Positions 21,361-60,327 of a stretch of DNA of 64,000 nucleotides are shown piece by piece (the first letter of the stretch is position 1; each line of letters opens with the position of its first letter). The stretch covers positions 4,030,001 through 4,094,000 of the forward strand of contig CM007991.1 of NCBI GenBank assembly GCA_002189035.1. The letters are read 5' to 3'. The notes beneath the pieces were generated by a model. It was not told where the DNA came from. It saw only the letters and a list, made by a program, of their open reading frames with translations, and made no database searches. A program made the position numbers and the translations under genes. The stretch is from Utricularia gibba. Its lineage: Eukaryota; Plantae; Magnoliophyta.

Positions 21361-22572
21361 TTAGAATCCCGGCAGCTCCATCGGCGAGCTCACCATACTC
21401 AGCAACTCATTCCAATAGTTCCTCGTATCCTCCATCTCAAGGAACGCCGGAGTCTCCCCGACTGAGGGGATCCCGTTGTAGCAGTCGCCGCTGCTGTTGT
21501 TGGGGACAGCGAGGTCCACGGCGTCGCTGATATAACCGCCGAAATCGAGTTGCTGAAAGGACCCCAGTTCGTCCATGTTGCCGCCGCAGCTCAAGCTTCC
21601 GATCTCGCATGAACCCGTGCTCGTCCCCGCCGCGGCTGCGGCCATCACATCGTTGGCGATAATTGTCGGAACCACCGCCGCGGAGGGGAAGTTGAGCGTC
21701 GAGGTTGGTGACTCCAGCACCGTCTGCGACGAGAAGAAGCAGTTACTCGAGGCACCGCCGGTGGCCTGCCACACCTTGAGCACGTCCAGGCACGGCGGCG
21801 ACGACACCCTAAGCGGCGGCGCCGGCGGCATGATGGACTTGTGTAGCAACTGCAGATTCGAGATAATCTTCGATTCTCGAGCCAGGCGCGCCTCCGCTTC
21901 CAGGCGCGCCGTCTCCCACTGCGCCATGTGGCTGAGATTAGCCGCCTGCTTCGACTGCGCCACCCCGCCGGAGTTGCTCTTGGGCTTATGTGTCACCGGG
22001 TCGATACCCATTCTCGTTAATCTCTTCTTCAGACGCGTGTTCCAGTAATTCTTGATCTCGTTGTCGGTCCTCTTGGGCAGATGAGCTGCTATGGCGGACC
22101 ACCTACGACTAATCCGAATTAATTAATAAACATAATCACAATTATCCCTTAATCACACTCCCAGACTCTTTCCAATTAACCAATCCATACAATGTGGGAC
22201 AAAATGTTCACCTGTTCCCTAGCAAAGCATGCAGCCGGATAATCGTCTTCTCCTCGTGGGCACTAAACTTCCCTCTCTTGATATCCGGCCGGAGGTAGTT
22301 CGTCCACCGCAGCCTGCAACTCTTCCCACACCTCTGCAACCCTGAAACCACACACACACACACCATGCTCACTCGCTCCAGCCTGATTCAAGCTGTTAAA
22401 CACAACAACAGCACAAAAGATGGGCGCGCGAGAGGGAACCTGCTTTAGCAGGGAGGGAGCGCCAGCTTCCATGTCCGTTCTGCTCGATGTACGCGAGCAG
22501 CTTCTGGTCTTCTTCTCGAGTCCAGGGGCCCTTCTTGAGCTCCTCCTTGGCCGGAGAGTCGGGTGTCCCCAT
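21361..22572 (-). CDS. R2R3-MYB transcription factor, MIXTA/subgroup 9 type (MYB16/17/106-like), 3 exons
   Basis: Exon 1 22572-22440 (133 nt), exon 2 22341-22212 (130 nt), exon 3 22102-21361: the canonical R2R3-MYB exon sizes. LKKGPWT...[20 protein letters not shown]...[12 protein letters not shown], then [10 protein letters not shown] and the subgroup-9 motif [22 protein letters not shown]. Confidence 0.93.
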
Positions 22573-22930
22573 CGGAGCGGCCGCACAGATGATGTCTCTC
22601 GGGAGGATGAAATGAGACCGTTGTAGTAGAGAGAGGGTCTTGGTGGGGGAGATCCAGAGTGTTGGGGTGGTGTGTGGGGGCTATAAAAAGTAAGAAGACA
22701 CCATAAATAGGGTTAGTCTTGTGGGGGAACCATATTATGGGACATTGTAAATACTTTACCTAAATAGATTTATGAAGGAAAAATGCCCTCCCGAATCATT
22801 ACACATTAAAAAAAATGCACTTTTATTTCTCGATGCGGGCTACAAGAATTGAATGCCCCAAATAAATTTCCCATAAGTCGATAACTATCTATCTATCTTG
22901 GCGTTCCGGGAAGCGTCGCGCCTTAAATAC

Positions 22931-28872: not shown

Positions 28873-29669
28873 AATCATGAAACAAGTGTAGCGCGACGCC
28901 AGTCCCCACGTCGCCGTGCTCCCGCCCCTTCAGGTTATTATCAAAATGTGGGAGCTACAAGATATACAATCAATTTGGTTCTCATTCGTTGATGATTGTT
29001 TGGATTTTCTCTAGTTTTTGGTTTTCCAAATTTTCGATCTTGGCGTTGTTCCCGTATATTGCAAGAATGTGAATTTATGGATTGGAGTTTCATTTGGAGC
29101 CTTACGTACTCTTTCACCGTGGTTTCGTTGATTACTGGGGGTTCGGAATTGTTAACTGTGAATTACGTCAAGGGCTCAATGTAGAATGGTGGAGCTTGAA
29201 TGTTGTAAACATGTATTGCTCTGAATTTGCCTCAGGTTCTCTGTCGCATGCCAGTACATTGTAGCCCATATATCAATTCTTTGGCATCATAGTACAGGCT
29301 CGTGTTTCAGGGGCACCCTTTGGGTTCCTGCATCCTCTTGCCTGTCTCCAATTGCCACTACATTTGTATATCCCCACATTCTTCACTATCACTGCAATCT
29401 TGTTCACTCGGATTAAGATTTTGTTGTTCAGATACAAAGTGTCATTTGGCGTGTTGCCTTATCGTAGACATTCCTTTGAGTTGCCTAAAGAGATTGTCAT
29501 TTGCTTATTTTTTTTTTCTCTTCACCTTCTTGTGCATAACTGCTTAGAAAGAGGCTTGTTGCATATTGTCCTTGGCTAAGAACTTTGTTCTTTATTACAT
29601 AAAGTATATGCCAACTAAAGGGAAAGGAATATCAAGGAGAATCTTGGTACCTGGACACTCGTAAGAAAT

Positions 29670-30414
29670 TTAGATGCTCTCGTGGAAGTTAGCTGATCTT
29701 GATGAAGCTGCTGGATTTGCCATGAGAGCAGCCATCGATCCATCCATGGTTCTACTTCTCTTACTATAGGGATCAGTAGCCTGAGAGAAACCAGCAAATG
29801 GCATCATCTTCTCATTCTTGATTCCCATTGTATGCCATACAGAACTATTTGCTGCTTCAATGGGATCATCAATCTTCATCGGTGGAGCTTTATCCTTAGA
29901 AGCGCAGTGTGATTGAGACAAGAACAACCAATAAAACAAATGGCTTAGAAAATGGACATGGAAACAATGACTTCGGAAGAGCCTGGAATAGTGAACTTTA
30001 CTTCATCTTTTCCTTGATCTTGGGCTAACATCCATAATCTTTTGCAGGTCTTTGCCTTTATGTTGTTACTACCCACAGGTGGAAGACTTTTGCTTTTGGA
30101 TTTTTGCTCATTTCCACCAGTGAGTTCAAATCCATCGTCCTGCGAAACCAAAACTTGAATCAGAAACAGAGCCTCCCTCCTCGCCCTTTGGATCAAAATG
30201 TTCTTTTTTTTTTACAGCTCGCAGGAAACTAACTCAGCCCATGACCGTCAAGAGGGCGAAGGGGTTAATCTTCACAGTATCCCAATTCAGAAAGAAAGAA
30301 ATTCAGAGTGATCTACAACCTTCCCATTTTGTTGAACTGCTCCAGTCTCTGAAACATCTGCATCGCCGATCCCGCGAATAGCTTGATTGAAGAATCATTC
30401 AACGCCTTGGGCAT
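29670..30414 (-). pseudogene. CDF (Cycling Dof Factor)-like gene lacking an intact Dof zinc finger; microProtein or pseudogene
   Basis: N-terminal MPKALNDSSIKLF (cf. DPAIKLFG). C-terminal exon MKIDDPIEAANSSVWHTMGIKN...LMANPAASSRSANFHESI* (cf. LRIDDPxEAAKSSIWxTLGIK...NPAALSRSxxFxE). Where the Dof domain belongs there is only KSLPPVGSNNIKAKTCKRLW. A probable extra GT-AG intron at 30001-29895 joins in frame. Exon 1 phase does not fit the best acceptor unless 1 nt is added near 30372-30378. Confidence 0.72.
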
Positions 30415-30838
30415 TATTGATCAGATTGCTCGGATCACCGTGCGGCTCCGCTCCCCCCACATCGGTTCTTTATTCAGAGGGTCGGTGGGGTCCACAACGC
30501 CGGCGCAATCTTTAAGTTCGTGGATGTCCTCCGCCGAGTCCAGATCCGCCTACCCCCGATCACTGACACGTGCCGGGAATGGGACCATCACCATGCTTTT
30601 ACACGACGGATAGACGTCATCATCCACGGCCATTGTTGGTTCCCATTTCTTGATCCCACGGCTCCCCTTGATCGGTCTCCCCTCACCACAGACAAGCTTG
30701 TCGTGTCCTAAAAATCTCGTGTCTTAGGCTTCACATTTGAGGAAATTTGCTTTCGTGGTTTGTAAGCGAGTCAAGCGTGTGGTTGGTGTGTTGCTTTTGC
30801 TTGCTTTGTGTGGAGCAGTAGTTAACTTGGTCGGAATT

Positions 30839-31873
30839 CTAAAGAAAGATGGATTGGATGGTTGGTCGGAATTCTAATCTTGAAGCACAGTAATTGATTT
30901 GGATAACCGGAGCTTCAGATGGATGCCGCCGTTGGAAGTAGAGCTGAAGTCTGGGAGTGGAAGCCTTGAAACAGGACTCGTGGGCCGCAGCCGCGTCCGC
31001 GGGGAAGACAGGACACGCGATGAACTTGGAGGCGGACGTGTCCACGCACAGGTAAACCTGGTAGAGCTGATAGTTCCCCTGTGTGTCCACATTGCATTCT
31101 ACGTACGGCAAGTACCCCAGTCCTTGCTGAATGGCCTTCCTTATCTGGTTCACCCCGTAAAACTCCCCTGGAATAATTCCTATCATGCCAAAGAGACACC
31201 CAAATCTGAGTTGGAATGAGTACTCAGAAAATGCGCTAAGGTTTCCTGTCTGCACCTGCGGTTTTGAGTGTTGTGAGAAGATTCGCTTTGTCTCTGAGGT
31301 CGAGGGCGGCCTGGAAGTAAGCGTGCTGATTCAGGGAGGAGCAGGTGCCGTGCTTCTGCCACTCGTGTCCCCAGAAACTCATCCCGTCGGCAGACGGACA
31401 CGCCAGTGTCGGCCATTCCGTTCGTAGCCTTGGCAACAGATCTGATATCTGGAGTCCAACACCACCAGGAATACTTGCAATTAGCTGCATTGCGACATCA
31501 AAAAGAGAAATTCCACTGACCGACCTGTTTCGGGTCTATCCTATCGCCCTGCCGGCAATTGTCCGGGTACTCGCCGGAGTTGTAGTCGGGCCAAAGGCCG
31601 TGGATAGTGAAATCTTTAGCTGGGGTTCCTGCCGTCGGCAAGCAGCAACTTTGCGTTGTCTCGCAAAGGGCCGGCGGCCACTGCACAAGAAAAGAAAACG
31701 AGCCACCGTCCCACCGGTAAACTCAAGAGTCGGAGATTTTCTAGACATTGAACCAATGACTTGCAGGTTACCTGCTGCACCAAGTAGAAGAAATCAAAGC
31801 TCGTAGAAGAGCAGATTGTGGATGACGACAGCAGCACAAAAAGCAAAGACGCGAGTCCCTCCCTTCTCTTCAT
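30839..31873 (-). CDS. Ribonuclease T2, class I (RNS1/RNS3/S-like), copy A, 4 exons; apparent 1-nt frameshift near the C-terminus
   Basis: Signal peptide, FDFFYLVQQWP, CAS I FTIHGLWP, CAS II FWGHEWQKHGTC, YQLYQVYLCVD, IACPVFP. The conserved ending RGRGCGPRVLFQGF lies in another frame (stop 30915-30917). As read, the ORF runs on to 30839. Confidence 0.88.
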
Positions 31874-32692
31874 CACTGCGTTTCTATCCAAATTCCAACC
31901 CTACGCTGCAACACCACACAAGTTTCCGTATTTATAGGGACTTAGCCTATGATTAGTTTCAGTGAAGTAAATAGAATATTATTAGAATAAACACTTATAT
32001 TTGATTAATTTTAAATTGAAAAAAATTGGAATAATATATTTGACCATTCAATTATTTTTAATTATTATTTTGCAAACAAATAAATAAATTATTCTGTAAA
32101 TATGTAAGGATTGGATTGAGTTATTCATTTTGTAGACCTCTTATATTGGGCATGTTATATTTCAATAATTTACTGAATTAATTCTGTTTAATTTTTAAAA
32201 ATTCTAATTTTAATCATTTTATAATAAAATAAAAAATTTTGATCATATGATTAACTTCCTAAATTATTAAATTTCTCAAATTTCTATTTTAATGATTAAA
32301 TAATAAATTAATTATAAAAATTATATTATTAATTTTTTATCTTCTAAAAATATATTTATATTATAATATTATTAAAAATTATAATATATAGTTTATGTTA
32401 TTAAATTTTATATCATCACATAAAACAGTTTTATAATAATAAATTAATTTTATTAATATAATTTTAAAAATAATTCTATTTTACATAATTTTAAACATAA
32501 ATAGTAGTTTCACTTTGTATTTTATTGTGTTTGTTTATTTTGCATTGCATTTATTGAAAAAAATAACAATACAAAATACAAAGTGAAAGCACAAGCTTAT
32601 TGTGGCAAGGCTTGATGTGATTGGACCGAGGTGGCCGGAACCTTTCCTTATTGGCTATGGCGATCCGTGAAGTATGGTGACGACGACGTCGT

Positions 32693-33771
32693 TTAAAAGG
32701 AGGGGAACGATATGCTTGAAGGGCAAGGTCCCTCGGTTGGGAAAATGGGGCAGTCGATGAACTGGGTACCGGAATGGTCGACGCAGAGGTAAACCTCGAA
32801 CAATTGCTCGTCGCCGTAGGAATCCTTGTTGCATTGGATATACGGGAGATGCCCAACTGCACTCTGTATCGCGCTTGTCACGCTGCTCAGACTGTAGGAA
32901 TTGCCATTGGGTTGGATTCCTGAATCAAAAGGTAATGGTCGTTGGTAATGTGTAATCGCGGGGTTTAGAGTTGGAAGACTGTCTCACCTGCTTGCGCGAG
33001 AGCTTGGAGGAGGTTGCTTTGGCTTTTCAGTGTCAGGGCTGCGTTGAAGTAGGCGTGCTCATTCAACACCGACTCCGAGCATGTCCCGTGCTTGTCCCAT
33101 TCGTGCGTCCAAAAGGATGTGTCGTCGCTGCTGGGGCAGGAAAGGGAAGGCCATGCGCTTTGCAGTTGGGTTAACAGGTCTGAAATCTGCGTATTCTCTC
33201 AAGGTGTTAGATTATTCGCTTCAATGGCGGGTAGTGGTTCATTGAAATTGTGGTTACCAGAGATGGATCAAAAGGGTTGCTGGGATCGCAGTTTGAGGGG
33301 TATGTGCCATCATTGTTATTTGGCCAGAGGCCGTGAATTCCGAAATCCGATGGTGGCTGCCCTGTTGTGGGGTAGCAGCATCCTTGGCTAGTGTCACAGT
33401 ATGATCCAGGCCACTGTAGTCATCATCAAACTCAACGTGACTTTCTGTAAACTGAACCATTGGCCCTTTTTTTTGTTTTGTTTTGACAGCCATATTACGA
33501 GCAGCAATTGCTTATTATACCAGAGAAAAAACATGTCGACACCGAGCAAAAGAACTATTACGAAGGCTGATGGTTTTTCTTTGTAAAATGCTAGCTCAAT
33601 TCCATGTGTATTTACTTCATGTGCCAATGAATGACTGTGAGACTGCTTATTATGAAAAGAACTCATACATACCTGTTGAACGAAGTAGAAGAAATCATAA
33701 CCCTGTGCAGCGGAGAGAAGAGCAAGAGACTGCAAGAGAAGCAGTCGTAGGAGCAGGGAAGAAGATGACAT
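32693..33771 (-). CDS. Ribonuclease T2, class I (RNS1/RNS3-like), copy B, 4 exons, intact
   Basis: MSSSSLLLRLLLLQSLALLSAAQGYDFFYFVQQWPGSYCDT, FGIHGLWP, FWTHEWDKHGTC, QLFEVYLCVD and CPIFPTEGPCPSSISFPSF*. Confidence 0.93.
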
Positions 33772-52444: not shown

Positions 52445-55393
52445 TAGGGCTGTGCAAAATTAATGAAACTCCAAATACTGAATTGAATTTTATGTTATTT
52501 GATATTTGGAATACAGTATTCGGTATTTGGTATATACTTTGTAGATTATTCTTAAAAATTTTGGATTTTGGTTTCGTATTTAAAATAGGAACTATAATTT
52601 GGTATATATCGAATAAGCCAAAGGTTTATATTATTATTTAACTATATATTCTTTAATATCTAAAATATTATATCTTTTAGAATCATTAATAAGAAAAGCC
52701 TTCGCTATTCTTCGTTCTTGAACACACTTTGACTTTAAGAAATCTAGTCCAAATTCAACCACCACCGTTCTTATCTACCATGGATAATGATTCAATTTAG
52801 CCATTATCCATTGAGCAATCTTCTAATCACCCACCTCCTCCACCACTTTTTGGGCAATTTGCAACAACTTCAGTGTCTGCTATTGATAGATCTAGCAGGA
52901 AGAAAAAGGAAACAAATGGCTTTGAGATCACCTTTATAGTCTGATTATAAAAGATTTGAAGGTTCTGATGGAACAATGAAGGCCCAATGCAAGACATGTG
53001 GACTTAAAATAAGAGCTAATACTACGAATGAGATGTATGCACTGAAGAGTCATAATACAACTTGCAAGGAAATGATATAATATATTGATAATGATTAAAA
53101 GCAAACATCTATCACATTTAATTCTAGAGTGAATTCTAATATGACTATTATCAGGTGCGATAGAAAGACTTTGATACGATTAATAATATATGTCGAGCTT
53201 TCTTTTTTATTTGTTTCAAGGCCTGAATTTGCCTATTTTATATCTATTGTTTGTCTTAAGTTTAAATTTTCTTCAAGATGGACAATGCAATGTGATATAT
53301 ATGACTTGTTTTACTTTGAAAATGAAAAATTGAAATAGTATTTTAGAAGCTCACATCAAAGAGTAAGTTTAACTATTGATAGTTGTACTTCGATTCAAAG
53401 AGTGAATTATATGTGCTTGACTGTTCATTATATTAATGAAGATTGGATATTGCACAAACGATTGTTGAGTTTCTGTCCAATTTCATCTTACAAGGAAAAA
53501 GACATTGGTGTTGCTATTGATAGATGCTTATGTGATTGGAGATTGAATAGAATTTTTACAATTACAGTTGATAATGCTAGTTCAAATGATATTGCTATTC
53601 AGTTTTTGAAAGAGAAGTATTGTAATAGGAAAGAAAGTGTGATTAAATGTGAATTACTTCATATGCGGTGTGTTACTCACATAATTAATTTAGTTGTGAA
53701 GGATGGTTTAAAATTGGCAATGGATTATGTGAAGAAAGTTAAAGAAGTGGTAACATATATTAGAGAATCTCCTCAAAGATTGCAGAAGTGTAAAGAATTT
53801 GCAGTGGCTGAAAATATTCAGTGTAAATATTCATTGACATTAGATGTGCTAACTAGGTGGAATGCTAATTATCTAATGTTAGAAACTGCACTTAAATTTG
53901 AGAAATATGATGATGAAAACACCACCAACTTTAGGAAAGATCTTTAAAATGATACATGAATATGCATGATATCAAATGCGAGTAATTGAGATGACGTGAA
54001 AAGACTTATCAAACATCTTGAACAGTTTTATCAACTTATTTTGAAAGTCTCTACTTCTAATTTGGTCACTGCCAATTGTTTTTTCCATGAGATTACAAAT
54101 GTTGATGAAGCTTTACGTGAATGACAAAACTCTAGTGATGTGAACTTGGTTGAAGTGACAATAAAAATGAGAGAAAAATATTTGAAATATTGGGGTGATG
54201 CAGAAAAGATGAACAAGTTGATATTCATTGCTGTTATTTTTTATGCTCGTCAAAAATTTGAGTATTTAGAGTATTGCTGAAATGATATTTATGGTAAAAA
54301 GTCAGTTGACATAATTTTTGAGATTAGAAAAACTCTCTACACTTTATTTGAAGAGTATAAAAGGAAGTTGATGACGGAAAATATAGAGGATGTAATTAGC
54401 AATAATGCAAGTGATGGTAATTGTAGAGACAATGGTCACTTGTCAAAGCAACCCTATAATGAGATTGACAGTGATACCAAATTATTGGAAAGGTTGAATC
54501 GATAGAAGAAGAACAAAGGTATGGGTGCTAAAGTTGATAAATCAGAATTGGATAAATATTTGAGTGAAAATATAGAAACAATCATGGCCAATTCTAAGTT
54601 TGATATTCTATCATATTGGAAAGTAAATGCTATTGGGTTTCATGTGCTTGCTCAAATGCCTCGTTATGTTTTATCAGTTCTTATTTCTACTGTCGCATCT
54701 GAGTCGACATTTAGTACATGTATCACATATTTTTTTCATAAACTATTCTAATTTAATATACAATCTTTCAATTTTTATTTAATATATGATAGATGGTAAA
54801 ATTCTAAATACTTTTAGAAGTTCTTTGAGTCCCAAGAGTATAGAATCACTCATATGCACCCAAGATTGACTTAGAGGATTATATGATCTAGGGAACACTG
54901 AAGAAGATCCTTTGAAACAAGTGAAATTTGAGAATGATAATTATCACATTATTGACGATATTTTTATAATTATATATTATTATTATTTTTATATTATCTA
55001 TCTAAACTAATATTATATTTATTAAATCTTATTGTTTCAGAGATAACATGAATTTCTTCCATCACTTTAGAATAGGAAGTTATGAATTTTTCGTAAAACC
55101 TAAATTATTGTATTTTATTTTATGGAATGAAATTAAGATTTTTTTATATATTATATTTGAAACACTTTTGACATTTTAAATATATGATAAGTATTTTACT
55201 ATTAATATTTAATGAAATAAAAAATTTGGAATTTAATGAACCAAATATTGAATATCGAAATAATTTTAATATTTGATATTTAAATTGACACCATATCTGA
55301 TTTGGATTTAGAATATGAATTTTTACAAATTTTAGTATTTGGAAGTTCCGTATTTAATTCAATATACTGAACACTATCGAATGCTCACCCCTA
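52445..55393 (+). mobile_element. Degenerate hAT (Ac/Tam3-type) DNA transposon, 2949 bp, non-autonomous
   Basis: TIRs tagggctgtgca and tgctcaccccta (10/12 inverted match). 8-bp TSD gtagaaag / gtaggaag (7/8). Transposase remnants: BED finger KAQCKTCG...KSHNTTC (~52980-53070), YMCLTVHYINEDW, ITVDNASSND, LTLDVLTRWNANYLML and dimerisation domain STVASESTFS; many stops. Confidence 0.93.
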
Positions 55394-56379
55394 GTAGGAA
55401 GTTCAAACTAGAGAAAACATTAAGCTTTAATTTGATAAATAGACTTATAAGAGATTGCTGCTGAAAATGTTTTATTAAATATTCATAAACAATGAAATAG
55501 TTATTAATAAAATCAGAAAGGTTAGGGATGGCATGCGGATATGAAAAACCATGTGAAGATCGGCGGTTAGAGATCATGCGACTACATAACTTTAGAAATT
55601 TAGTAAATACTTACAAAGATTGTTATGACTATAAAAGGTGACTAACTAAGATGAATATTGATGTAAATGAAAAGTTTTTAATAGAACAAATAACAGTCAT
55701 ATATGACTCACAATAAAGGAAAATGTGACGTGTCAAATGTAAAATATTAATTGGAATAAATTGTGTCAATAAAAATTAATATGATGAGCAATTAATATAT
55801 AATACCAATTGTGATGAATATAAATCAAGGACATATTTTACTTTTGTTTTGTACAAAGAATATCCGTGATGTATGCTTTGATCGAATGCAATGATATGAA
55901 GATCTTTTAAAATCATGTGAAATAATGTTGTGGTGATAGTTTGGGTAATCAACGAATCAATAGAAAATCTGAATCTGATCACATGTTCTTATACAAAAGA
56001 TATTGAAATATAAAAATGCTATAAATCTGATATTGTATATTGCTGTTTGGTATATTTGAAACTCTTAGAAAACTGTATTTTATAAGGTATCAAAGAATAC
56101 TAATGTGAATACAAATAATATGTTTAATGATTTAAAATGATAAAATTGGATAATTAATCTATGGAATAATTTAAAATTATATGAGACTTATATTCAAACT
56201 TTGTAGTAAAGGTAAATATAATTAACTGTTTTATTTTTTAAAAAATAAATATATTTATTGATAATAAAATAATCTAAAATCGATTGTCAAATAATTACAG
56301 TTTCATTTATTTTCAGAAATAAAAATAACTCATGAAAACATTAGACCCAAGGGCTGGACTGGATCCATCAAGAGGATGT

Positions 56380-56500
56380 GATGGCCCAACCCAAGTACCC
56401 GAAGAGCCCATGAACTGACCGTTACAAGCTATCGTTTTGTAGATTATGCACCACGCGTTGGATCTGGTAGGCCCCATGGATTAATGGGCCTCGGCCCATA
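56380..56500. promoter_or_regulatory. Cluster of site II (TGGGCY/RGCCCA) elements, promoter-like
   Basis: ggccca at 56383, agccca at ~56405, tgggcc at 56485 and ggccca at 56493, just before a GC-balanced, T-rich transcribed-looking region. Confidence 0.45.
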
Positions 56501-59500
56501 ATTAATCAAGTTCCATGCTGTTAACGGCTGCCACCTCGCGCGTGGTGTCCACGTTGGAAATTTAATGATATTTTAATTTTTTAAAAAAATAAAAAATTAA
56601 TAAAATAAAAAAAATTATTTTTGGAGTATTAGAATGAATGGTAAATTGAATCTCTAATTTTAAAATATTGATTGTCCCCATGTAAGGTGTGTGAAGATAT
56701 TTCATTGTTGATCGATCCTGCGCGAATCGGCGGCACTTGCAGTCAGTGAAGAGAATTGGGGATTTAATCCCTGATCAGTCATGCTTGTCTCTTCAATGAT
56801 ATAGAGCAATTGATGTGGTAGTTTCTCCAGCAAATATGTGTTTTTTGGTCTATTTATTTCATTGAAGAAATGGCCATGCTTTGTTTTTAGGCCCCATGCG
56901 AATGCCTGCTCGCACCCTTACCGCTGCCAGGGAGATTGTATTAATAAACTAGGACCCTGTGTCAGATATTGCCTCCTGCATGATTGAATTACCTGTTTCG
57001 GAACCGTGTTCTTGAGAGCACAATAGGCGTGGCGGGAATGGCTATGCTTTTTCGATGTTTTATCATGTCATTGTTCTTGAATGTAAATTTTTGGGACATT
57101 GTTGTAAAGTAAGGTGTAAGGGCTTGATCTTAATGGGGCCTTACTGTGGTGGATATGATCCCCTTCTCTACTGCAGTAGTTATCCGCATCATAATAATTC
57201 ATTTGTTGCTGTTTCTTCTAGATTTTAGAAACATTAACTTGTGTTGGACTGGAAAAGAAACGAATTTTTGACTGGTCAATCTCTATTCCTCACTCATGTG
57301 ATGAACAGGCAGTAGAGGGTGAGTTAAATGATGATGGAAAAAAAGTGAAGAATTTTTCACTGCTTGTTCTCAGCACTGCATCTGGCATGAATGAAATGGC
57401 CATGCTGGCCTACACATTTTTCCTCGTGTGCAGTATAAAACTAGCAGTTAATGCCGGTAGATGAAACCAGATGATAAGGAGTTTATCTGAAACAGGAACT
57501 TGAGAATACAAACGCTTCACGTGATTGGAGGGATGATACCACAGAGCCTTGGATACTGTACTAGGTGTGTGTCTGTTCCCATTTCTGGTGGCTGGGAAAG
57601 AAAGCAGGCTGGTTCATGTTGCAAGATGTGCTGTGCTTTTAACTCTTTTTTTTTTTTGAAATGCAACAGGAAAAAGGATCCGAAGATGGAAGACAATGGA
57701 CACCCCACCACAAAACCTTCCTATCAGGTATGCAGCATCTGTCTTTTACCAATTTCCCCGAAATTCAACATTAGATGAACTACAAATCACCGGCTCCGAC
57801 ATGGCATCCGCAGTGGGGTGTTCGTGCATTGTCACAGCTCATACTCTCCCATCAAGTGACATTTTCTTGTCCTTGAAGTTGTAAATGTTACACTTATGTC
57901 CTATCACGTGTCTGGTATGTCGAGGAAAACAGTGTTGAATAATCAGGTTTGTGTGTGAAACATAGCATTGCCTGATTGAAACAAGGCATTGAGTTTTGCT
58001 TGCTGTTGCCTCCATCGATTTATTTCCCTCCCGAAAAAGTCTCCAACTGCTGACAGGTGCTCTTATTTCTATCCACCAAGCAGCTGCTCCCCCCTCCAAC
58101 CTCCAATTATTGCTGTCCCACCCTGGCCTTCCTCCATCTTCTGCGTATAAATGTAACCCTCTCTCCCTCTTCTCAAATGGGATCCAACCTCTTAGCATCT
58201 TGATCATGTAGTTAGTGCATATACGCCCTCTTGACTGATTTACTTCCTTGCAGAAGAGCTGTTTCAAATGCTAGAGCATGTCTGATACAGAGGTTAGCCC
58301 ATGTGATTCCTCAAGTGCTGCCTGGCTGGTTGGCTGGTTTTGATGCAACCTGAAAGGTTGGGTCTTTTCAAGAGGCATCACAGGAGACATTCATTGGCTT
58401 GAGAGATGATTGGACGGCTGGGAGTGGCAGTGGGAAAACGAGACACGCATTAAATGGTGTTTGTCCTTTTCCTTCGCAACAATGCCTGAGCAAGGCATCT
58501 CGTACATGAATGAACACGGCTCATCGGCGATGCCTGTGTACGGATGTTTTCAATATTTTTCGCTTTGAAACCGGCTATCTTCTTCAAAATCACTCAACGA
58601 AAAATGTAAAAGTATTTCTTTTTTGAAAAATTTATATATTTCTAAAATAAATATAATTTAAGTTTTCTGAAACTTTGAATTTATAATTTATTCAAAAATG
58701 TATAGTTTTAATTTTTCTTGAAATTTATTTAACTAGAATGTTGGTTTTTTTGTGATTGTGAATGCAGCAGCATTTAACCCCCCTCCGAAAAAAAAAACGT
58801 GTTTCCCCACCGTCCAACTGAAAGATCGTTTTCAAGCATTGATTACATATAAAATAATTTATTTATTTTTTAAAATTATTGTTTATATTTCATACCTGTG
58901 TGCTACCTATTCGTCAAGTATGATTTAAAATTTTAAAAATATTATAAAAATAGCTCAAATCCGAATTGAAAATGAAATTGGGAAAGGTTGGTTCTGATTG
59001 GAAATCTAAAGCAGAACCAATTACTACGGGCTTGTTCTTCATAATTTTTTGAAATGACAATGTTTAATTTTTAAATATTTAAATATTTAATTTTTTTATA
59101 GTAAAATAAAAAATTGAGATTCTATAATTGATTTCAGAAATTATTTAATTTCTCGAATGTATATTTCAACCATTAAATGATATATTAATTTTAAAAAATA
59201 TACTATTTATTTTTTATCTATTCTAAAAATATATTTATATTAGAATATTAAATTATATAATAGTTTAATACATTAAATTTTAAATATCTATATATATATA
59301 TTATTCTATTCAATTTTATAATATAATTTTATGTTATTCCATAAGACATTTTTATAATCTCAAATCGATTCTATTTACACATTCTTAAAATTGATTATAT
59401 TCTACATAATTTGATTCATGACTTTAAATTACATAATATGCCATGGATAGCTAAGCTCTCTAATGGCCCCCTCTAGAGAAAGCGTTATAATTCAATAAAT

Positions 59501-60327
59501 TTCAATAAGGTGATAGATGATAATTTTATTCTAAAAAGGTATTTAATCCCAGTGGCACGTGTTGATTATAATTGACTCCACGTTTGCATAAAATAATTCC
59601 GCCTTTAAAAAAAGAGGAAATGAACATTCTTTTTCCGGAGGTACTAAGTGCTTTTGTGATGTAAGTTTTAATTTGTTGAGGGTTAATTAAAAATCAGATT
59701 AATTTATACAAAATAAATAAATTAAAAAATATGAATGCTTTTTTTTTGTAGAAAATATTATTTCAATAAGTATTATTAAAATATTTATAATAGATAATTG
59801 AAATATTTTTTTGAAATAATAAGGATAATAAAGTATTATTATTATAGGATTAATTAAACACCTAATTAATGAATTTGTGTTTTATATGTGATTAACAAGT
59901 ATTACTTAACTCAAAGTAATCTATAATATCCTACCAAATAAGTTTTAATTATCAATTATGTGATGGAACCAGGGAAGAAAGTATTTACAAAATTAATTTT
60001 TATAATGAGTTCAATTGAATTTAATAATTTTTAGTTACATTTATTATAAATTTAAAATATAATTAAATTCAAAATTATTATTTATGTTAAGACGTTCAAA
60101 TTTTTAAGATTTTTTTAAATCTAAATTTAGAAACCCAAATGAGAAGTATTGCTATTGTATGCATGAATTTTATATACAATTTGGGGTTGCACGGACAGCC
60201 ATCCCCCGGTTGTCCGAAATGTGGATTTATAAAGACGCACGTATGCTCGCTGTTTTACTTGCTTGTTTCTCTGCATCCATTCATTCTTCTTCTGCTGCAT
60301 CTTTTCCTCTCTTTTGTGACCTACTCC

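Follow-up and report, generated by a model that had tools for sequence, protein, structure and literature searches.

Kloosterman et al. reportedly described in 2013 truncated natural alleles of a potato CDF gene, StCDF1.2 and StCDF1.3. MicroProteins of plants titrate the proteins with which their larger relatives interact; among them, the B-box proteins miP1a/b engage both CO and TOPLESS. Furthermore, an N-terminally shortened isoform of CDF1 is produced from an alternative start site, and LITTLE NINJA and the short isoform of AFP1 are known as plant microProteins (PMC9252474). Within the CDFs themselves, the IKLFG motif binds TOPLESS (PMC11588431; PMC9252474, citing Goralogia 2017) and the C-terminal domain binds GI and FKF1 (PMC11588431; PMC9252474). 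The first-pass annotation of the DNA presented here relied on these motif roles, and both papers establish them.

The window, i.e. the whole 64-kb stretch of DNA that we analysed, carries on its minus strand a CDF-derived locus (29670-30414) that has kept exon 1 and the last 74 codons and from which the DNA-binding part is gone. Judging from the C-terminal profile match, the alignment of exon 1 at the DNA level and the neighbouring RNase T2 gene, its ancestor is a CDF gene. We lean towards the view that the locus is a deletion-eroded CDF relic that lacks the DNA-binding domain, most probably a gene copy disabled not long ago. Like the truncated StCDF1 alleles and the short CDF1 isoform, it is devoid of one of the three CDF modules, a loss that is expected to change regulation. 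However, these alleles and this isoform keep the Dof finger and have lost an interaction motif (either the C-terminal FKF1-binding part or IKLFG), whereas the locus has lost the finger and its interaction motifs remain. Moreover, they have been shown to be expressed, whereas the locus is known here from its sequence. It also shares with these plant microProteins the concept that an interaction domain is retained in a small protein without the functional domain, and possibly a link to TOPLESS and photoperiod control. However, these microProteins are known to be expressed, to be translated and to bind their partners, whereas the ORF of the locus would yield such a protein only via a candidate splice. 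A third comparison is with the deletion-eroded, unprocessed pseudogenes that fractionation leaves behind after a genome duplication. As in these, the neighbourhood is conserved, exon 1 survives together with a portion of the last exon, there are internal deletions and a frameshift, and no gene product is on record. The locus differs from them by its C-terminal block, which is still a clean open frame with a selection-like substitution bias.

The last 74 codons of the locus (29673-29894, minus strand) correspond to the GI/FKF1-binding domain of CDFs (…MKIDDPIEAANSSVWHTMGIKNEK…ANPAASSRSANFHESI), as identified by HMMER and by a CDF profile. The frame 29894-29673 reads DKAPPMKIDDPIEAANSSVWHTMGIKNEKMMPFAGFSQATDPYSKRSRTMDGSMAALMANPAASSRSANFHESI and is closed by a TAA stop codon (29670-29672, minus strand) that is placed as in intact CDFs, one residue past HES. 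About 75 nt past this stop, an AATAAA read from the sequence (29591-29596, minus strand) may be a polyadenylation signal. A HMMER search of 1.84 billion representatives gave 117 matches at E<=1e-3 (best E=5.7e-10, identity 40-57%, the best match having only 57%), nearly all of which align at the extreme C-terminus of Dof/CDF proteins; the majority of the matched proteins have a Dof finger and an N-terminal IKLFG. Moreover, a profile built from 46 full-length CDFs detects the block with E=2.1e-21 at profile positions 359-428 of 429. The C-terminal CDF signature, which the first-pass annotation had described as free of stops, is thus confirmed by both searches. The CDF consensus of this domain is …PKTLRIDDP.EAAKSSIW.TLGIKN…ANPAALSRS..F.E. 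Its PKTLR part, which is 94-99% conserved, reads PPMK here, four positions being changed, and the change from L to M creates an ATG exactly where the conserved domain starts. Over the whole block, 9 of the 34 highly conserved columns (>=80% consensus) are broken, whereas 112 CDF representatives from angiosperms and gymnosperms deviate at 2.2 of them on average and at no more than 7. On the plus strand of the same region (29806-29874), the antisense frame of IDDP...GIKNEK also matches orthologue loci in tblastn, on their antisense strand. These matches merely mirror the conservation of the sense strand, and a second gene at this position was rejected.

The closest named proteins, both from Lamiales, are those of Rehmannia glutinosa (KAK6139350.1, P0001, 357 aa, starting with ...KDSSIKLFGKTIA) and Castilleja foliolosa (KAL3631170.1, P0003, 294 aa). 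The locus shares with these two CDFs a homologous exon 1 including ...DSSIKLF and a C-terminal domain that is 58-62% identical over the 63-64 aligned residues and ends at an identical stop position. It differs from them, as from Arabidopsis CDF1-6 and potato StCDF1, by the absence of the Dof finger, of the acidic pre-finger region and of the central region. It also differs from intact CDFs by the frameshift in exon 1, the replacement of LFG by LFA and the degraded PKTLR.

The locus and the Castilleja CDF also have a neighbour in common, since an RNase T2 gene adjoins both. In Castilleja, the CDF is located 440 nt from the RNase T2 gene. The window harbors a tandem pair of RNase T2 genes on the minus strand: copy 1 (30839-31891), used as synteny anchor, lies upstream of the CDF-like ATG and stops some 420 nt short of it, and copy 2 is found at 32696-33771. 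Their exons share 40-68% identity with the RNase T2 gene beside the Castilleja CDF, which supports the existence of a common ancestral CDF-RNase T2 neighbourhood, as far as can be judged from these alignments. The proposal of the first-pass annotation that the locus occupies a syntenic CDF position therefore fits what is seen in Castilleja. However, the RNase T2 gene is in the opposite orientation in Castilleja (L003:10001-12723, tail-to-tail) compared with the window (29670-33771, head-to-tail, with RNase T2 upstream on the same strand), which points to a local inversion in one of the lineages. Comparisons by tblastn with the window ORFs of at least 40 aa, in part covering the window outside 32401-32520, revealed nothing else in common within 10 kb of the CDF loci of Rehmannia, Sesamum, Rumex and Pistacia. 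The surroundings are those of an ordinary gene-dense plant region, with a methyltransferase gene converging from downstream and, 8 kb from the locus, an R2R3-MYB gene (21364-22650, minus strand). This MYB is MIXTA-like (MYB16/MYB106 type), its assignment to the LOF type having been rejected. The Genlisea contig that carries the orthologous MYB ends short of the CDF locus. The best relatives of the MYB protein belong to Lamiales, with about 50-59% identity (53-59% for the C-terminal exon), and partial matches from Genlisea reach 64-65%; together with the closest CDFs, these values point to a fast-evolving Lamiales lineage, possibly Lentibulariaceae, for the window.

The loss of the Dof zinc finger, which had been proposed from a reading of the sequence, is borne out by all searches. 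The motif C-x2-C-x19-23-C-x2-C occurs in none of the six frames across the 64-kb window, the pieces of the locus give no match with the Pfam Dof domain (PF02701; C-x2-C-x21-C-x2-C), and the CDF profile run against 305 ORF pieces yields no match for the finger region, whatever the frame. The first-pass annotation had also recognized an echo of the finger, reduced to LPPVGSNNIKAKTCKRLW within a 46-aa segment. This supposed remnant does not rise above chance level in three tests (Smith-Waterman, CDF profile and DNA alignment). Its Smith-Waterman comparison with 47 full-length CDFs gives z=1.4, with 16 of 200 shuffles equalling it, and the local alignment of the DNA from 30312 to 29895 with exon 2 of the orthologues does not exceed the level of shuffled sequences. 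In a MAFFT alignment, the middle segment began on the end of the Dof domain, a placement that was rejected since the other similarity tests gave it no support. The middle segment as a whole (29895-30319, minus strand) has no detectable CDF homology. It includes the 'exon 2' of the first-pass annotation (30139-30002), two acceptors at 30139 (cag|GAC) and 29983, and the proposed intron (30001-29895), and about 420 nt separate the ATG ORF from the C-terminal frame. Its longest open frame has 88 codons, which is no remarkable length (P=0.12), and was rejected as a sign of coding. The segment may simply be the old intron, a large deletion extending to just before the C-terminal domain. Measured on the shortest orthologue, the loss from exon 2 amounts to at least about 520 nt.

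The other end of the locus is also damaged. The start codon and the N-terminal motif region MPKALNDSSIKLF (30376-30414, minus strand), a remnant of the TOPLESS-binding IKLFG, were delimited by DNA alignment with exon 1 of the Rehmannia CDF. The ATG at 30414 opens MPKALNDSSIKLFAGSAMQMFQRLEQFNKMGRL, followed by a stop, and the stretch 30414-30376 runs from this ATG to ...DSSIKLF. The local alignment of the two exons has a score of 35 (shuffle maximum 27, z=8.7). Among the 305 ORF pieces searched with the CDF profile, exon 1 is the sole other piece at the top of the ranking; it matches the profile where it should, although E is 3.1. The codon after IKLF specifies Ala (LFA), whereas LFG is found in 64 of the 64 CDF representatives that have the N-terminus. 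Furthermore, a four-species alignment reveals a gap directly after ...ATCAAGCTATTCGCGG, of 16 nt versus Rehmannia and 13 nt versus Castilleja and Sesamum, three Lamiales orthologues; its junction lies at 30371-30372 (minus strand), a position that may vary by a few bases with the alignment chosen. Since neither 13 nor 16 nt is a multiple of 3, the reading frame shifts right after IKLF(A). Hence, the statement that the IKLF motif is well preserved holds for IKLF itself, which is present and homologous at the DNA level, but not for its context, which is IKLFA rather than IKLFG and is immediately followed by a frameshift. In the remainder of exon 1 (30320-30370, minus strand), the frame that matches the orthologues after the gap, i.e. 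the ancestral one, reads IGDADVSETGAVQQNGK (the Rehmannia counterpart being KLGDEVVSDVTVTEQRQ), whereas the ATG frame reads SAMQMFQRLEQFNKMGRL and then stops. The donor at 30319 (AAG|GTTGTA) is in phase 0 in the ancestral frame only and in phase 2 in the ATG frame; that of the orthologues (AAG|GTTTGT) is in phase 0. The orthologues consist of two exons, with a phase-0 intron after an exon 1 of 46-48 codons, and form one continuous ORF, a structure that the locus does not fit.

The consequences for splicing are as follows. The five GT donors within the ATG ORF (30403, 30355, 30337, 30319 and 30316) are all in phase 2. The sole strong acceptor ahead of 'exon 2' is tttcgcag|GAC at 30139, which is in phase 0 for the frame DDGFELTGG.... 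Splicing from 30319 to 30139 would give MPKALNDSSIKLFAGSAMQMFQRLEQFNKMGRTMDLNSLVEMSKNPKAKVFHLWVVTT, a product of 58 aa terminated by TAA at 30060-30058. Because of the gap in exon 1, use of the best splice sites thus brings the ATG frame to a stop at 58 aa, before the C-terminal domain. The 107-nt GT-AG interval that had been proposed as an intron (30001-29895) does exist and joins the two named frames. However, the fused product of about 170 aa predicted from it does not hold, since the ATG/IKLF frame cannot join the frame of 'exon 2' via the good acceptor at 30139 and leads to the 58-aa ORF instead. The chain made of exon 1, 30139-30002 and 29894-29670 comprises 145 open codons, only in the post-gap ancestral frame; it has no ATG and is preceded by a TGA. 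A Dof-less ORF in three exons would thus be continuous if the gap in exon 1 were absent, and it is broken by this gap. Joins in the ATG frame that retain LPPVGSNN... require purine-rich acceptors at 30093 or 30087 (aaaatccaaaag| and aaaagcaaaag|). There is also a candidate in-frame splice, from 30319 to 29983 (acceptor ttcactattccag|G), that would give a protein of 135 aa with both motifs.

Compared with intact orthologues, the locus thus carries disabling lesions, namely the frameshift gap in exon 1 and the loss of the Dof finger and central region, within a neighbourhood whose RNase T2 gene is common to Castilleja. The relic would be what is left of a two-exon CDF gene, the counterpart of the Castilleja CDF adjacent to RNase T2 and, more generally, of the closest protein matches from Rehmannia and Castilleja. 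Its acidic region, its entire Dof finger and its central region have disappeared with no detectable remains, and the gene would probably no longer produce a CDF. A pseudogene resulting from gene loss in a deletion-prone and fast-evolving Lamiales genome appears most likely, and its transcription may persist. If so, the locus would be a further case of deletion-driven gene erosion in a compact, fast-evolving plant genome, and a CDF copy would have been lost from a conserved CDF-RNase T2 neighbourhood, which helps annotation and is unsurprising.

The timing of such a loss can be approached from the substitutions in the C-terminal block. At sites where the three intact orthologues agree, change in the window lineage amounts to 0.19, 0.25 and 0.47 at codon positions 1, 2 and 3, respectively, based on small counts (25/112 and 15/32). 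The replacement-to-silent proxy is about 0.35 by a rough Jukes-Cantor estimate and ranges from 0.26 to 0.40 among the intact orthologues themselves. Hence, the block does not display a neutral pattern, i.e. an absence of codon-position bias and a dN/dS near 1. The values for protein divergence are about 0.53 for the block versus other Lamiales and about 0.73 among those Lamiales, and they are likewise 0.56 and 0.70 for the intact neighbouring MYB protein. Several features may be taken as signs of constraint: 74 codons without stop or frameshift, the canonical stop, AATAAA, the MYB-like divergence and the bias towards third positions. The broken conserved columns, including those of PKTLR, appear as signs of relaxed constraint. 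Since the substitutions are biased to third codon positions, any decay would be recent, and by rough reckoning neutral evolution during up to about half of the branch is compatible with the small counts. Taken together, these sequence data are consistent with an inactivation that is recent or with continued use, and not with decay of ancient date. Because the C-terminal block is open, its change biased to third positions and its divergence ordinary for the lineage, either the inactivation was probably recent or a Dof-less form may have been intact for some time before the frameshift in exon 1.

Continued use is what would be expected if the locus encoded a working Dof-less small protein derived from a CDF, i.e. 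a microProtein or decoy, an alternative that we regard as doubtful and nevertheless as the best placed after gene loss. Such a protein could be the 135-aa product of the splice from 30319 to 29983, whose acceptor ttcactattccag|G is reasonable, or a peptide restricted to the C-terminal domain, with either the Met of MKIDDP (69 aa) or that of MLAQDQ (84 aa) as its start. Such a product would not bind DNA, but it would bind the kelch repeats of FKF1/ZTL as well as GI, and perhaps TOPLESS, and would thereby be a competitor of full-length CDFs in degradation or co-repression. The intact C-terminal ORF with its canonical stop and poly(A) signal, the third-position bias, a divergence typical of the lineage and the ATG that the L-to-M change places at the very beginning of the conserved domain are all in favour of this explanation, as are the literature-established assignments of the TOPLESS and GI/FKF1 domains (PMC11588431; PMC9252474). 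However, the TOPLESS motif has lost its invariant Gly and continues with out-of-frame residues, the PKTLR part is altered at four positions, the 135-aa model contains a 30-residue linker without homology, and the peptide-only models lie downstream of the 58-aa ORF. Moreover, in a collection of 5.8 billion clusters, no protein of 49-192 aa shares words with the C-terminal block, and our literature search found no paper on a Dof-less CDF. The decoy is therefore less likely than the gene relic, because the exon model fails, exon 1 is frameshifted, the Gly of the TOPLESS motif is replaced and 9 of 34 conserved columns are broken. That a finger-less derivative, of 135 aa or restricted to the C-terminal domain, titrates FKF1/ZTL-GI and perhaps TOPLESS from full-length CDFs is, in our opinion, unlikely; if true, it would be a photoperiod-pathway microProtein of a type so far undescribed. 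Should the finger-less form be both expressed and translated, it would represent the first case in nature of a decoy that derives from a CDF and is directed at the FKF1-GI degradation machinery or at the TOPLESS co-repressor, and it would make day-length signalling accessible in a simple way.

'Dof-less' CDFs from other species do appear among the matches, and they are of two kinds. Some are ORFs beginning at the internal Met of MRNVPVGAGRRK, and others are gene models from the draft genomes of Coptis, wild Sesamum, Cucurbita and Pistacia. For instance, P0022 and P0087 (Coptis), P0026 and P0027 (Sesamum), P0095 (Cucurbita) and P0046 (Pistacia) keep IKLFG and the C-terminal domain and skip the Dof finger. 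Since all these finger-skipping entries come from draft-genome gene models, they probably result from mis-predicted introns. Hence, neither kind is evidence for real finger-less proteins, and these entries do not argue for a working protein at the locus.

Some of the public sequencing data bear on transcription. Among 105 words sampled from 29450-30480, a share of 0.43-0.72 is present in nine runs from three studies, and four runs from one study plateau at 0.69-0.72. The small size of the contig sets (7-86 Mb) suggests that they are transcriptomes, and the presence of up to 0.72 of the words in such probable transcriptome sets would be in line with a working protein. The share expected is 0.63 if the 337-nt intron is removed, 0.65 if both introns are removed, 0.79 if only intron 1 is removed and 1.0 for identical DNA; for a transcript with ends at about 30440 and 29570, it is 0.70 if only the 107-nt intron is removed and 0.84 if unspliced. 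With a sampling error of about 0.045, and as a sequence difference of about 1% between samples would yield an equal plateau, these models are not separated. The data would also agree with a transcribed relic acting, if at all, as RNA, either as an expressed pseudogene or through read-through from RNase T2, with no role for a protein. The RNase T2 gene is immediately upstream on the same strand and ends about 420 nt away, the shares of 0.43-0.72 fit no single spliced model cleanly (models 0.63-0.84), and the main ATG ORF has merely 58 aa. However, no feature of the sequence indicates an RNA function and this explanation overlaps with that of a pseudogene, so that we consider it improbable as a separate one. 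An assembly artefact, through collapse or omission of the Dof-coding part of an intact CDF or through an erroneous 13/16-nt gap, could account for the fact that no run exceeds 0.72 of the words, as could sample differences. However, it is very improbable, since at least three separate differences would have to be wrong, namely the exon-1 gap, the more than 500 nt that are missing and the numerous point changes at conserved sites. Moreover, a 13/16-nt gap in non-repetitive sequence is atypical of long-read error, and the flanking genes are contiguous and orderly.

Two other observations concern the rest of the window. The last exon of RNase T2 copy 1 encodes, beyond the conserved ...CPVFP, an unusual tail of 55 residues (ADAAAAHESCFKASTPRLQ...), which may be due to a frameshift or be a real extension. 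Furthermore, the region 48000-60000 is AT-rich (GC 0.27-0.29) and contains fragments of hAT-type transposases, for example at 53402-53947 on the plus strand, for which there is a matching fragment in the Pistacia locus as well (L005:4660-5886).
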